From the NCBI GenBank assembly GCA_000708835.1, contig DF237323.1, positions 26,074 through 90,073 on the forward strand: 64,000 nt of DNA, written 5' to 3'. The notes under the pieces were generated by a model. The model saw nothing but the letters and a program-made list of their open reading frames with translations, made no database searches and had not been told where the DNA came from. Numbering within the stretch: position 1 is the stretch's first letter; each line of letters opens with the position of its first letter. This stretch comes from Klebsormidium nitens (taxonomy: Eukaryota; Plantae; Klebsormidiophyceae). Shown here piece after piece: positions 27,930-46,980 of this stretch. The translations under genes and the position numbers were made by a program.

Positions 27930-28444
27930 TCATCCTAGCAAGTACAGATTTTGGTGACCGGGGACGGCTTGCCCGCTTCTCCACTCCTCCCCCGGGTCTC
28001 GGAGTGCATGTCCGATATCCGCCAAGACTCGATGGTTCCTACAAATCAGATTATGATTGGTCGCTAATCCATCCTCACTCCCGCAACTAACGGTGATATA
28101 CCTCTCACAGCACACCTCCAGACACTCTCCGTCCCGGGGCCGAGGGTCGAACTCCACCAGCTTCTCAAAGGCGAACGGCCGGTTATGCGTCTGGACGTAA
28201 CGCACGCACCGGATTGGGGGATCGCCGTTACGGCCCCTTTCGTGGTTCCATGCATTCAGACGCCTCTTCAGAGACCCGGCTCTCCCCTCGGGTGTGGCGA
28301 CGACGATCGTGCCGATTTGGATGTCGCCATACGAGGGCAGCGCTAGAAGCAGGAAGGTGACGTAAGCCGCGCCCAGTCCGTGCGCGACGATGTTTGGGGG
28401 CTTGGTCGTGGGGGCGAACTGGAAGATGTCGAGCAACAGATCCT
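27930..28444 (-). CDS. Terminal exon of paralog C: C-terminal half of a class-3 lipase-like alpha/beta-hydrolase domain lacking the catalytic Ser
   Basis: DLLLDIFQFAPTTKPPNIVAHGLGAAYVTFLLLALP...IGTIVVATP...VRYVQTHNRPF...TNHNL lines up with the Lipase_3 order of motifs (GHSLGGA, TFGxP, RxV..D.VP, His). Confidence 0.65.
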
Positions 28445-31400
28445 GCAGCGGGAATCAGGAATTTCCGACTTTCATGCAGACACAAAGTGCACAAGTCCTT
28501 GGAAAATTTGAAGAGCAGCAAATCCTGCAGGGAGAAGGAATATAGACTTTCATGCAGACACAAAGTGCACACGTGTTTGACAGATCTGACGAGCGACAGC
28601 TTCCGCAGGGGGAAGGAAGACAGACTTTCATGCTGACACAATGGGCACAAATGTTTGAGAGATTTGACGAGCAACCGATTCTGCAGAGGGAGGAATACAG
28701 AGGCAGATGCACAGTTTACCAGTGCACTTTTACCTGGGAAACTTGAACATCTAATTTGTGAATTCCTAATTCGTCTTTGATGCCAAAAAGCAGGTGGTTT
28801 GGAAGAACGGCGTCACTGGAATCTCCGAAGCTGAGCCAGACCGCACTGACATTCTAAGAAAGCTCTGAAACACAGTTCTCTACTTTGCACTCGTCCGATC
28901 TCAAGTCAGCTTTAATGAAGGTATCCAGGACCCCACAGAATGCGATAGACGTTGCAAATCTCTTGACGAGCTTTGCGGGCGAAGGTGTTATTCTTTTTGC
29001 TAATTCCGCGGGGCCCCACCGCGGGTAAAGACACTACTGACGGAGATCGCCATATTTTCTCAAGGACCTCTATTTGTGCGACGCTCCCCCAAACCTTCAA
29101 AAAGTTGTGTCCGGGCTTGCCTTGTAGGCTGCTTTTGAAATGAGCATGGCAAAAACAAAGAAACTGGTCTTCTATTAGGCGTGTACGAACGCAATCCAAA
29201 ACGATATACGCTCCTAGTGGTCCTCAAGAGCCTATGATGAAGATTCCTCACGCGGAGGTCGTTGCCGCTGAAATATGCGTCTTCCTTGTCTGAGAACCAG
29301 GATGCGGAACCAAGAGTTCCTTTGGAACGCCACCCGATGACTACGCCCGGGCCGCCGGAATGGATCCCGCTCTGCAATAGCGGAAAATAAAAGTGGAGAA
29401 CTTGACAACAGCGTTAGCCAGAGGCCAGTAGATCTTAGTGGGCGATTGGAAATTCGAAAATCCCAGGGTCAACCCAGATTTGCGAAAAGCAAAACGGACA
29501 CGGGAGCAAGACTGCTGGTTGGATCACACTGGATGAGCTCACCATCAAACGGGCAGCCAGAAACAGCTGCTCGGCCGAGTCTAGGGCAAACCTGTGTCAT
29601 CAGAAGCGGAAGCGTTTGAGTCACTAATTTCTAGAAAGATGAACCATCAAAACTACAAGCTTTCAGACCTTACATTCGCCTAGAAACAAGTTTTCAAGCA
29701 GCATACAAGGAATGTACGTTACGATTAGGATACAATGACCGAGCCGGGACTGCGAAGAGGGGTCTCTCGCCAAAGCGATCAGTGACTGTGCCTAGTTCGG
29801 ACGTCTCTATCAAATATCACTCCTCGTGACGAAAGTTATCCCGGAACATTTGTACCTAGCCTGCGCTTGAGCCGGGTACTGGAATCCAAAGTACTCCACA
29901 TGCTCTCTGAGCGGGGGAGTCGGTAATCGAGGACCGAAGCTGGGGACCTTGTCGGAGCGGATGACGTGGCAAGGTTCCAGCACAAAACCCTCGTTAATGT
30001 AGCGTCTGATACCAAGGCAGTGGACGATCGAGAATTGGTTCTACACATCCCAAACCTTGGTACATGAATCGTTCAAATACATGACTACTTCAAGAATGAA
30101 TCGGGACGCGCGTTGACCTACAATTTCAACAGCATCCCTAATCCAAATTTCAGAGTTTCTGATTTTCTTTGAGTTTCTGATTGTCCTTTTCCCTGCTGTT
30201 TCTGTTTTGATGCGTAACCCGGGCAGAAGATCGCGCCCGGGTCGTCGGTACTGTCGCTCCACGCGGCGTACAGCTCCAGGAACTGTTGCTTATCCAAGCG
30301 CCAGAACTCGGTCACGTGCATGGCGTCGAAACTGATTTCCAGATTCTCTTCGATCGGGATGGACACCTGTGAAAAGGACACGCGAAGCGACGAAATGAAG
30401 AGACTGTTACGTGCGCGAGCGTCGCCCAGCTTTCCGGCAAGCCACGGATAGGTGGTGGTGGAATAGAAGGGCGTCCAAAAACGGGGCTTCGCGACTTCGA
30501 AGACCTGCTGGAGTGAGCCCGTTGGTCGCCGGAACAGGCTTCACTGGTCACCTACCGATTTCTTGCCAGGGGTCGTCTTAAGAATTGCTCAACCAAGGTT
30601 AATATTCCCCTACCGCAGCCCACCTCTTCACAATCTTCCATCAACAAAATGGACTCTTACTGCTGTTTTTCCAGACAAATCTCAACTTTCGGTAGTTGAT
30701 TCATTGACCGTTGGATCAGCTAACTCTGCCAATTGTACGGTACGACTTGTACTCGTCGAGAATATGGGTTTCACGATTTCGCGGGTTTTCCCCAGGGTGT
30801 TCTAGAGATAATAAACAAAACCCTCACAAAGGCCACTCCGTAACGGACACCAAGGCTCGCGTCTCTTTTGCCCTGGGGTAAAAGCGCCGGCAAGTGATTT
30901 CCGTCCAGCACCGGAGATCCGTCGTCCCTTTCCCAGCTCTTGTCGGTGTAGAGCAGTATTGGCACCTGTGCGGACGTCGATATGTTTGTTTGAATGACCC
31001 AACTTTTTCTTGAGCTCCTATGAGAGCCTGAACTAGCTGATTGTAGAATAAGTAGAGCTGTCCAAACCGAAGGCGGAAGTTCGTACAGGCCGCTTATTCC
31101 GAACGGCCCGAGCTAGTCGTGGAGTTGAACATTGAGGAACATACGTCACCGTGCGACACTTGAAATAAAGGCCCTGAAAAAATCTTCCCCTCTTTTGACG
31201 ATTCGTTCCGACATAGACGAGCAGACTGAATTGCAGAACGAAGCCGATAAACTCAAGCGACGCGTAGCGCGAATCCTTACCACTTCGAAATATTCGCCGC
31301 GAATCATTCTCATTCTTTCCATCTGTTCTTCCAAACTCATCGGCGGCGGAATGCACTCGACTCCCGGAAAGGCACCGGTCGCGGCTAGCGTATCCCAATC

Positions 31401-45000: not shown

Positions 45001-46980
45001 ACGGACTACGGAAGAATGAACCATCAGTCATCTTTCGACTTACCTTTTTTGCCGTAGGAGCCTGGGCTTTGCTTTTAGGTCGGATTTCGGGACAAGAAAC
45101 TCCCGCCCATTTTACACAGCGTCTTGTAAGGAGCAGTCTATAGGGTTAGATTCATACCACATCGTAGGATTTTCCACGGACGACCTTCGTTCTGTTCAAT
45201 TGTTTCCTCGAGAGTTGGTGGAGCGGCTGTGATCTGGACCCCTGAAAAGGCACCGGTAGCGGCGAGCACGTCCCACTCAGTTGCGTCTCTTGAATTGCCG
45301 ATTGGTTCGTCCACTTTTGCAACACATTCGAGCTGAAAAGGAAAGCAGAAACAAACTTGATACTTCACCTCGTCTTATTAAAGACCAATGGTTCCTAATT
45401 GTATGGAATACAATCCACCAATCGTTTGCGAAGTGGGCAAAGAGCCCGCGTTCTTTTCGTAAGTTTACCAGCAGTTGGGCATACTCGGACTAGCAGAGAT
45501 CGCGCCAAAGAGTGATTCAACAATATTGATCTTTCTGAGACGTTTCCTTGGTTCGCCAGATTTCCAACGCTCCTTCAAGGATCCGACGTCTGCAGAACTA
45601 GAGATATGAAGAGAGGCACTTGAGGGAAAAGATCGAAGAGCTTGGAACGTTAGCAAAGCATTCGGCGGGCAATGGAAGCCGACTTCAGGGCGCTGCTCAG
45701 ATCTTCTTTCGGCAGAACGGAGGCCGTCAAATTTAAATTTGAAACGTCTTTTCTATACACGTCTGCGATCCAACCCTTACCATCATGTCCACAGTGCATT
45801 TTAGATCGTGAGCCGCAGCCACCATGTTCTCCCCATACTCGTTCTCGGTGAATAAGAAGCACGCGCCGTCGTCGTTCTTGTGCAGATCTCCTGGCAAGTT
45901 GTACCGAAGTCTGGCTGCTAGCGGTCCGCCCATCGCTTCGATGTCGCGTAGAAGGGTCAATACACTTTCGTGACACTCTTGCGGATTCGACGCTGCCTTT
46001 TCGATACCTTCTACCGTTTCCTTGATTGATTTAAGAATAGAAGCGGAGAGGGAGACGAAAGCGAGTGAGTGGGTTACGCGTCTTAGGGTCAGGAAGTCAT
46101 CGGTGAGAAAGAGACGGCTGACGTCTGCCGGGATCATTATGCCTTTCTCCTGCAAGACCCAGGAAAGTGCGTTAATTTCGCTGGTTAGCAAAGCCGTTCA
46201 ATCATGGGCTAAGTATACCCTATATTACTTTCGCCCTTAAGCGGAGGCGAAACAGAGGCTATAACGTAAAAAGTCATGTTGGAAATGAAGCATAGTTCTG
46301 TAGCGTCGACTTATGAATAATGAGGGTGCTGATTGTTTTACCAGTAGGAGGCTCCGCTCACCCAGGGAAGCCGCTGCTTAAGATGGAAAAATCGGTGACA
46401 AACAAGCATTGAACCAGTCAGGAGACCAGAAAAACATTCAACAGCTCACAATCTCAGTCCTCAGGGCCAGGCACCACTAGAACAGAATGGTACGTACCTT
46501 GTCATTGAGCAGCTGACTCAAGCCTGGACCCATGGGCACCTCAGGCAGGACCTGAATCTCGGCCAGCAATGTGTGTTCGTCCCAAACGGCCAGATACGAT
46601 TCTACCATTTCCCTGTAGTTCGGGGCTGAAATTGCGCGGCGGCCTAGCGGCGTAACCGCGTCTCTCAAACCCACGTTAACTGCCTCTTCGAACACCCCTC
46701 CGCGCTCCTTAACCACCTCCGCTAACCAGCCCAGCTCCTGGACCCAGGTTACGAGGTCCTCGGTTTCCGCTAATAGCCTGCGCTGCTCGCTAACCAGGGT
46801 TTTGAGCAGCTGGAAGGAGGCGTGTTCTCTGAGGAGGAGACCTCTGTCTTTACTCAAACTCTCGCCTAAACTTGTCATGAAATACGTCAGGAAAAGCGCG
46901 CCCTCCCACCGAACTAGACCGGGCGGAGGTTCGAGTCTTGGCCGCGCTGTTGGCTCTCGTGACTTTGCCGAACACCTCAT
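41515..46980 (-). CDS. Paralog A of an uncharacterised multi-exon gene ending in a lipase-3-like pseudo-hydrolase domain (possibly disabled)
   Basis: Exons 46980-46498, 46149-45781, 45332-45158 (175 nt versus 174 in paralogs, so +1 frameshift), 44490-44350, 43722-43574, a lipase exon starting at 42693, and last exon 42033-41515. The exons align with paralogs B and C in sequence, splice position and phase. Middle exons are not fully resolved. Confidence 0.7.

Follow-up and report, generated by a model that had tools for sequence, protein, structure and literature searches.

The alpha/beta hydrolases of the DUF900 family (PF05990) are mostly bacterial. Elsewhere in the same fold, neuroligins (in which serine has become glycine), the gibberellin receptor GID1 and ABHD5/CGI-58 are non-catalytic proteins, and in EDS1, PAD4 and SAG101 of seed plants catalysis is dispensable. 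Here we describe three paralogous genes of the alga Klebsormidium nitens whose products end in a DUF900 domain that is predicted to be catalytically dead. They occupy positions 27930-46980 on the minus strand of a 64,000-nucleotide (nt) stretch of contig DF237323.1 (GenBank assembly GCA_000708835.1, contig positions 26,074 to 90,073), which is called the window below and in whose numbering K. nitens positions are given. The genes are KFL_003740060, KFL_003740070 and KFL_003740080, referred to as units A, B and C; the public annotation lists all three as hypothetical, and a literature search on the three gene ids found no paper. In our judgement these are probably tandem paralogs of the Klebsormidium lineage, ~630-690 amino acids (aa) long, which combine an orphan helical region of ~300 aa with a dead DUF900 domain of ~330 aa that is kept by selection and works as a pseudoenzyme.

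The C-terminal half and its catalytic residues

The earlier note on this DNA, made from the letters alone, had proposed a three-part protein with a helical N terminus, an "unknown core" (exons 4 to 7) and a C-terminal "pseudo-lipase" (exon 8), and had been unable to assign it to any named family. The helical N terminus and the hydrolase-fold C terminus are retained here; core and pseudo-lipase are instead one domain, and for this half of the protein a family can be named, since hhalign, Pfam and the ESM Atlas all point to DUF900 (PF05990). The spans concerned are as follows.

34447..38070, minus strand: DUF900-type domain of unit B, exons 4 to 8, residues ~300-628 (hhalign, Pfam, ESM Atlas)
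27930-30965, minus strand: homologous DUF900-type span of unit A
41515-44490, minus strand: homologous DUF900-type span of unit C

Exons were searched one by one; full-length work used the public proteins P0001 (unit C), P0004 (unit A) and P0005 (unit B). An hhalign comparison of the three paralogs with eight bacterial plasmid-borne proteins gave a probability of 96.7% and an E value of 4.7e-10 over 274 columns, with family positions 339-644 placed on DUF900 positions 66-360. Because this alignment runs from exon 4 (VPILLYTD on v.vatTR) through to the end of exon 8, the supposed core and pseudo-lipase form a single DUF900 domain. The eight comparison proteins came from Shinella, Hymenobacter, Rhizobium, Sinorhizobium, Roseibium and Bradyrhizobium; two of them were scanned with Pfam (PF05990, E values of 4.9e-42 and 3.1e-65), and the remaining six were picked as tblastn relatives of these. 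A tblastn search of P0005 against 7.3 Gb of plasmids returned four weak matches, all of them on alpha/beta hydrolase genes. Pfam itself placed residues 386-492 of unit B on positions 16-119 of the PF05990 profile (E value of 4.7e-4; 20.1 bits, against a gathering score of 20.5). With residues 300-628 of P0005 as the query, the feature search of the ESM Atlas reached a score of 0.94, with 206 of 256 features in common and DUF900 in all ten of the best family-carrying matches, and its structure search returned DUF900 clusters only, at template modelling (TM) scores of 0.76-0.79 over 289-306 residues, among them 0.78 over ~296 residues. That exons 4 to 8 are one domain agrees with a published description of DUF900, an alpha/beta hydrolase whose sheet is extended to 11 strands (PMC11878206). 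Other searches were empty: Pfam on single exons gave noise alone (Arb2, MUG113 and others, E > 0.05), PDB sequence searches with exon 8, full-length and exon 2 profiles gave nothing significant, and neither NCBIfam nor PADLOC matched the trio proteins.

The trio and the bacterial DUF900 proteins thus share a fold, an N-terminal beta-rich extension and the order of their motifs over ~274 aligned columns. The HGYN-type strand of the bacterial proteins corresponds to CPGF, WPS.G to GW.S.G, AHSMG to AHGLGA, AAPDiD to AAsEe and the acid of S..DrAL to T.NRPF, and the position of the C-terminal histidine is common to both. The K. nitens proteins differ in that the serine and the aspartate are replaced (in unit C the histidine as well), that they are encoded by eukaryotic, intron-rich genes and fused to an orphan helical region of ~300 aa, and that they have diverged so far that Pfam misses two of the three copies. 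As read from the sequence, exons 4 to 8 are a divergent, catalytically dead member of DUF900.

Relatives were found only in three public read-set assemblies, one of which is a close Klebsormidium-like genome (contigs L001 and L004, run SRR23617307). The distant relative L002/L003 consists of exon-size open reading frames (ORFs) on two Logan contigs (runs SRR14092358 and SRR14092360) and is ~31% identical over exon 8. It has a phase-2 intron after "..NPG", that is, after exon 5, and a 49-nt exon 6, as in K. nitens, and because both features are common to the two it is a true intron-bearing eukaryotic homolog. In the hhalign alignment the serine of AHSMG falls on AHGLGA, the DrAL aspartate on HNRPF and the histidine on N[H/Q]N; the triad was placed on this basis and by reading the codons.

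Nucleophile: bacterial AHSMG (Ser); A and B AHGLGA (Gly, GGA); C AHGLGA (Gly, GGT); L001 AHGLGA (Gly); L002/L003 SHSLGG (Ser, AGC)
Acid: bacterial S..DrAL (Asp); A and B THNRPF (Asn); C TNNRPF (Asn); L001 THHRPF (His); L002/L003 QDRAF (Asp)
Base: bacterial His; A and B NHN (His); C NQN (Gln); L001 NHN (His); L002/L003 KHSY (His)
28377..28379, minus strand: glycine codon GGA at the nucleophile position of unit A
34909-34911, minus strand: glycine codon GGA at the nucleophile position of unit B
41968-41970, minus strand: glycine codon GGT at the nucleophile position of unit C

The Ser-Asp-His triad is incomplete in all three K. nitens copies and intact in the distant relative L003. By their residues, the Klebsormidium copies are dead proteins derived from a once active serine hydrolase, because the intron-bearing homolog L002/L003 keeps the serine, the aspartate and the histidine. 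Furthermore, since every Klebsormidium-type copy with a readable site has AHGLGA, the loss of the serine is older than the duplications. The lipase-like C-terminal fold with a dead nucleophile that had been read from the letters alone is supported: it is an alpha/beta hydrolase in which serine has been replaced by glycine.

The ratio of nonsynonymous to synonymous substitution rates (dN/dS), taken from Nei-Gojobori (NG86) counts summed over exons, was as follows.

A-B: dN/dS 0.38; dS 0.56
A-C: dN/dS 0.21; dS ~1.6, saturated
B-C: dN/dS 0.25; dS ~1.6, saturated

Such values, 0.21-0.38, indicate purifying selection on the coding sequence, and exons 3, 5, 6 and 8 are the most constrained (dN/dS 0-0.33).

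Gene anatomy, relatives and neighbours

Unit C is identical to P0001 (GAQ87747.1), the protein returned by the large profile search described below, and a word search with P0001 found, besides itself, only P0004 and P0005, encoded on the same 90-kb contig. The three minus-strand units had been placed roughly 6.5-7 kb apart; three-member direct-repeat families with a spacing of 6.3-7.1 kb bear this out.

27930..33434, minus strand: unit A, KFL_003740060 (P0004), exons 1 to 8
33434-32937, 32250-31882, 31454-31281 and 30965-30828, minus strand: exons 1, 2, 3 and 4 of unit A
30366-30218 (homologous end) or 30366-30122 (public model), 29591-29543, 29371-29252 and 28442-27930 (including the stop), minus strand: exons 5, 6, 7 and 8 of unit A
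34447..40296, minus strand: unit B, KFL_003740070 (P0005, 628 aa), the cleanest model
40296-39937, 39375-39004, 38557-38384 and 38070-37936, minus strand: exons 1, 2, 3 and 4 of unit B
37395-37247, 36506-36458, 35602-35483 and 34974-34447 (including the stop), minus strand: exons 5, 6, 7 and 8 of unit B
41515..46980, minus strand: unit C, KFL_003740080 (P0001, 688 aa, GAQ87747.1), the most divergent copy
46980-46498, 46149-45781 and ~45332-45185, minus strand: exons 1, 2 and 3 of unit C
~44728-44636, minus strand: extra annotated exon of unit C between exons 3 and 4, 93 nt (public model)
44490-44350, 43722-43574, 43168-43120, ~42693-42574 and 42033-41515 (including the stop), minus strand: exons 4, 5, 6, 7 and 8 of unit C

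Read from the sequence, the boundaries divide each unit into eight homologous exons, the acceptors being CAG and the donors GT (the exon 5 donor of A is the exception), and all introns are in phase 0 save intron 5, which is in phase 2. Exon 2 measures 369, 372 and 369 nt in A, B and C, as the earlier note had it, exon 6 measures 49 nt and exon 7 measures 120 nt; exon 1 differs in length (498, 360 and 483 nt). The shared exon order, splice positions and phases that had been claimed stand for the eight exons and their phases, with the reservation that A has lost a donor and C has an extra annotated exon. Likewise, a homologous 149-nt stretch of exon 5 is present in all three units, as claimed, but the public model of A has 245 nt: it uses a cryptic GT at 30121-30120, 96 nt downstream, and so gains a K/Q/S-rich insert of 32 aa. 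The same model leaves exon 8 at 28116 for a short exon at 26894-26971 (minus strand), skipping the conserved last ~60 codons. The long exon 8 frame of A has ~85% aa identity with B, and the 28116-to-26971 splice probably reflects either a flaw in the annotation or a minor isoform. The introns have diverged as described, since tblastx and blastn between units align exon blocks only and introns are unalignable even between A and B. Within intron 7 of unit A, a 78-nt unit is repeated three times in tandem at 28467-28700 (71-78% identical), with no counterpart seen in B or C.

The patches rich in guanine plus cytosine (GC) that had been noticed upstream of each unit were recovered 50-700 nt before the start codons, with a GC content of 0.63-0.70 against 0.51 for the window.

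33601-33900: GC-rich patch upstream of unit A, GC 0.63
40351-40950: GC-rich patch upstream of unit B, GC up to 0.70
47251-47700: GC-rich patch upstream of unit C, GC 0.66

Because the observed/expected ratio of CpG is ~1 throughout the window, these are GC islands and not vertebrate-style CpG islands. An Rfam scan of the window gave no match.

The N-terminal half is encoded by exons 1 to 3 and opens with a conserved RPxLEPPPGL motif.

38384..40296, minus strand: orphan N-terminal region of unit B, exons 1 to 3, residues 1 to ~300, predicted all-helical
31281-33434, minus strand: homologous N-terminal span of unit A
~45185-46980, minus strand: homologous N-terminal span of unit C

Its helical nature, suggested earlier, holds as a prediction, with helices appearing at low confidence in an AlphaFold2 (AF2) model. 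Exons 1 to 3 matched nothing in Pfam, NCBIfam, PADLOC or the PDB sequences, and the feature and structure searches of the ESM Atlas found no look-alike for this region (best TM score of 0.35, the models of the region being of low confidence). The same limit applies to a comparison with the four-helix bundles of CC, RPW8 and HeLo domains, for which there was no Pfam match and an Atlas TM score of at best 0.35 from low-confidence models. From a word search with an exon 2 profile came two ORFs of exon size and nothing else, a single close relative being the source of both. No signal peptide or membrane span was seen on reading the sequences of the trio proteins.

The family is rare in public data. 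A HMMER search with an exon 8 profile against 1.84 billion representatives recovered three proteins, namely unit C, an L001 fragment and an L003 ORF; no locus was confirmed when JGI metagenomes were scanned with the exon 8 alignment, and a word search with residues 296-628 at E <= 10 gave nothing beyond the three paralogs. The L001/L004 genome holds at least three copies, with exons 75-89% identical to those of K. nitens at the DNA level. In the window, a further copy has left a trace.

19788..19958, plus strand: relic of an inverted fourth copy, reduced to the final ~55 codons of exon 8 plus the stop (74% aa identity to B)

Synteny links L001 to positions 22328-27128 of the window, and L001 has a full-length plus-strand copy at the site of the relic. 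This A-type copy carries an in-frame stop in exon 1 (ECFQ*NPRQL; noted at L001 1836-2168, plus strand), which points either to a pseudogene in that genome or to a fault of the assembly. A C-type fragment of exons 2 and 3 lies 1.2 kb upstream of it, so that the order of the array differs from that in K. nitens. In trees built from exon 2 and from the end of exon 8, unit C groups with the L004 copy in a C-type clade, apart from an A/B-type clade, with support of 100/99-100; no branching order emerges inside the A/B type. Because the subtypes form separate supported clades, the duplication that parted C from A/B is older than the split of the two taxa. The relic and the different arrangement of copies in the close relative substantiate the idea that this lineage-restricted family evolves by tandem birth and death.

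The syntenic block between the relic and unit A (22328-27128, plus strand) contains ORFs at 22341-22856, 23384-24121 and 24507-25787, of up to 426 aa, with a GC content of up to 0.61 and without a Pfam match. It matches L001 9773-14275 at 74-83% nt identity and, on this evidence, appears to be a conserved gene of an unassigned family. Directly upstream of unit C, two long ORFs of 618 and 649 aa (48451-54143, minus strand) contain an impB/mucB/samB (IMS) polymerase domain and a UBZ zinc finger and look like a DNA polymerase eta-like gene. A strong negative GC skew is present at 49-50 kb. Farther on, a 390-aa ORF (61181-62353, minus strand) has weak matches to Stc1 and to a double zinc ribbon, below the Pfam cut-offs.

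Function and alternative explanations

The history of the trio may be sketched as follows. The hydrolase domain goes back to an active serine hydrolase. In the Klebsormidium lineage, before the duplications, glycine replaced the serine nucleophile and asparagine the aspartate acid; in copy C glutamine replaced the histidine as well, and the copies have since been held by purifying selection. Fold, dead triad, restricted distribution and selection are shown, whereas a non-catalytic binding or adaptor role and any part in stress or defence are inferred. The DUF900 fold could serve as a binding or scaffold module, through the former substrate pocket or the surface, and the helical region could mediate partner binding or self-association.

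Several observations weigh against this reading. Unit B falls 0.4 bits short of the PF05990 gathering score, and full-length A and C have no Pfam match. The AF2 model, built on a 5-sequence alignment, has a predicted local distance difference test (pLDDT) score of 42 and is too poor to judge the pocket; Foldseek with this model against the PDB returned nothing at E <= 0.001 and a faint 71-column match to lysosomal phospholipase A2. The scarcity of relatives is bounded by the few public Klebsormidiophyceae genomes and by the queries used (exon 8, exon 2 and full length). Unit A may be degenerating, its exon 5 donor at 30217-30216 (minus strand) being TT where B and C have GT, and so may unit C, in which the 49-nt exon 6 encodes FALLRLFFVQLFLFRP (public model), unlike FALDSAEQLFLAARLM of A and B, and the histidine of the triad has become glutamine. 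Exon 7 is relaxed between A and B, at a dN/dS of 0.88. Finally, the case that the proteins probably function without catalysis is built solely from the missing residues and the purifying selection.

Among the alternatives, the one that survives best is that of the earlier note, namely a lineage-specific immune or stress-signalling family that uses a dead lipase-like fold as a module, in an EDS1-like logic with reversed order, and evolves by tandem birth and death. It is compatible with the anatomy, and we regard it as a tentative possibility. Bacterial associations speak in its favour: DUF900 is fused with CHAT and EAD7 in cyanobacteria (ESM Atlas), a CHAT / DUF900 / serine protease cluster lies on the Hymenobacter sp. 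GOD-10R plasmid NZ_CP141188.1 (63624-70446; L005), and in Bradyrhizobium (L012) the gene for DUF900 comes after one for a serine protease. The Hymenobacter neighbourhood has the caspase-plus-hydrolase pairing described for bacterial conflict systems, in which caspase-like domains always have a neighbouring alpha/beta hydrolase (PMC7159879). In brown algae, DUF900 is the C-terminal domain of a ROCO group put forward as candidate immune receptors (PMC11378527), and locus gain and loss is documented here by the relic, the other arrangement in L001 and the stop codon there. However, the trio proteins match no NB-ARC, TIR, LRR, EP, RPW8, HeLo or defence-system profile, the family is small (three genes and one relic), and the K. 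nitens copies are not catalytic, as the DUF900 domains of bacteria and brown algae presumably are. The dN/dS values, 0.2-0.4 overall with no exon above 1, show no sign of diversifying selection.

A more specific form of the pseudoenzyme reading, which we consider unlikely, is a dead DUF900 receptor or adaptor peculiar to streptophyte algae, in which the pocket would bind a lipid-like or ester ligand and the helical region would signal by oligomerisation or recruitment. If true, it would represent a hydrolase-fold signalling module of the green lineage independent of EDS1, GID1 and D14/KAI2, with a part in how an early terrestrial alga responds to stress or microbes.

It seems improbable that the three units are duplicated DNA in decay, whether as pseudogenes or as genes about to be lost, without a current function. 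In favour are the lost catalytic residues, the missing exon 5 donor of unit A, the scrambled exon 6 peptide of C, the relic at 19788-19958 and the exon 1 stop of the L001 copy. Against this, all exons are open in the three copies despite a dS of 0.56 to ~1.6, with dN/dS at 0.21-0.38, and both subtypes are retained in the second taxon. The open frames, the kept splice sites and the invariant pseudo-active-site motifs argue for maintained genes rather than decaying DNA.

Hardly any likelihood attaches to the proposal that the trio are still enzymes, in whose DUF900 pocket a substitute nucleophile or some other chemistry is at work. The histidine is kept in A, B and the L001 copy, and several cysteines of exon 8 (CVRY, EVxC) are conserved in all copies and in L003. 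These cysteines also occur in the triad-bearing relative, however, and hence are not a replacement nucleophile; moreover, the nucleophile elbow has glycine in every Klebsormidium-type copy, the aspartate has become asparagine or histidine, and C is without the histidine. An origin from a transposon or virus was rejected, as no such domains are present and intron positions are conserved with the 31%-identical relative. An origin from a vertebrate, human included, was likewise rejected.

Comparison with known systems

With EDS1, PAD4 and SAG101, to which the earlier note had likened the trio, the K. nitens proteins have in common an alpha/beta-hydrolase fold together with a helical domain, and this is an analogy only. 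The EDS1-type proteins combine a class-3 lipase with an EP domain, in the reverse order of the trio, and no sequence or profile similarity was detected; kinship found no support, as the three full-length public proteins gave no Lipase_3 or EP-domain match at E values of up to 10. Much the same holds for plant nucleotide-binding leucine-rich repeat (NLR) receptors, since Pfam, NCBIfam and PADLOC gave no NB-ARC, NACHT, LRR or TPR match. Bryophyte NLRs with N-terminal alpha/beta-hydrolase domains have been described (PMC10952240, PMC7145615).

A parallel in kind is offered by neuroligins, GID1 and ABHD5/CGI-58, in which the hydrolase fold was likewise kept by selection after the loss of catalytic residues and reused for binding, in neuroligins after the same change from serine to glycine. 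These belong to unrelated subfamilies of the superfamily. In domain arrangement, the nearest cases are the group 4 ROCO proteins of brown algae and diatoms (PMC11378527) and the bacterial CHAT, EAD7 and HEAT fusions, where DUF900 is also the C-terminal part of a multidomain protein; the trio differs from them in having no ROC-COR, LRR, CHAT or EAD and in its N-terminal partner, the orphan helical region. What is new is the fusion to that region and the existence of a eukaryotic tandem family; the DUF900 kind of C-terminal half is known.

Taken together, three proteins listed as hypothetical in K. nitens, a key model among streptophyte algae, can be redescribed as a dead DUF900 domain joined to an orphan helical domain and selected in two subtypes. 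At present this is a small, lineage-restricted family of putative pseudoenzymes; the active-looking relative and the dead paralogs form a natural pair for experiments. In land plants, non-catalytic alpha/beta hydrolases serve as central receptors and immune regulators (GID1, D14/KAI2, EDS1), and an independent case in Klebsormidium would show how easily the hydrolase fold is recruited to non-enzymatic roles.

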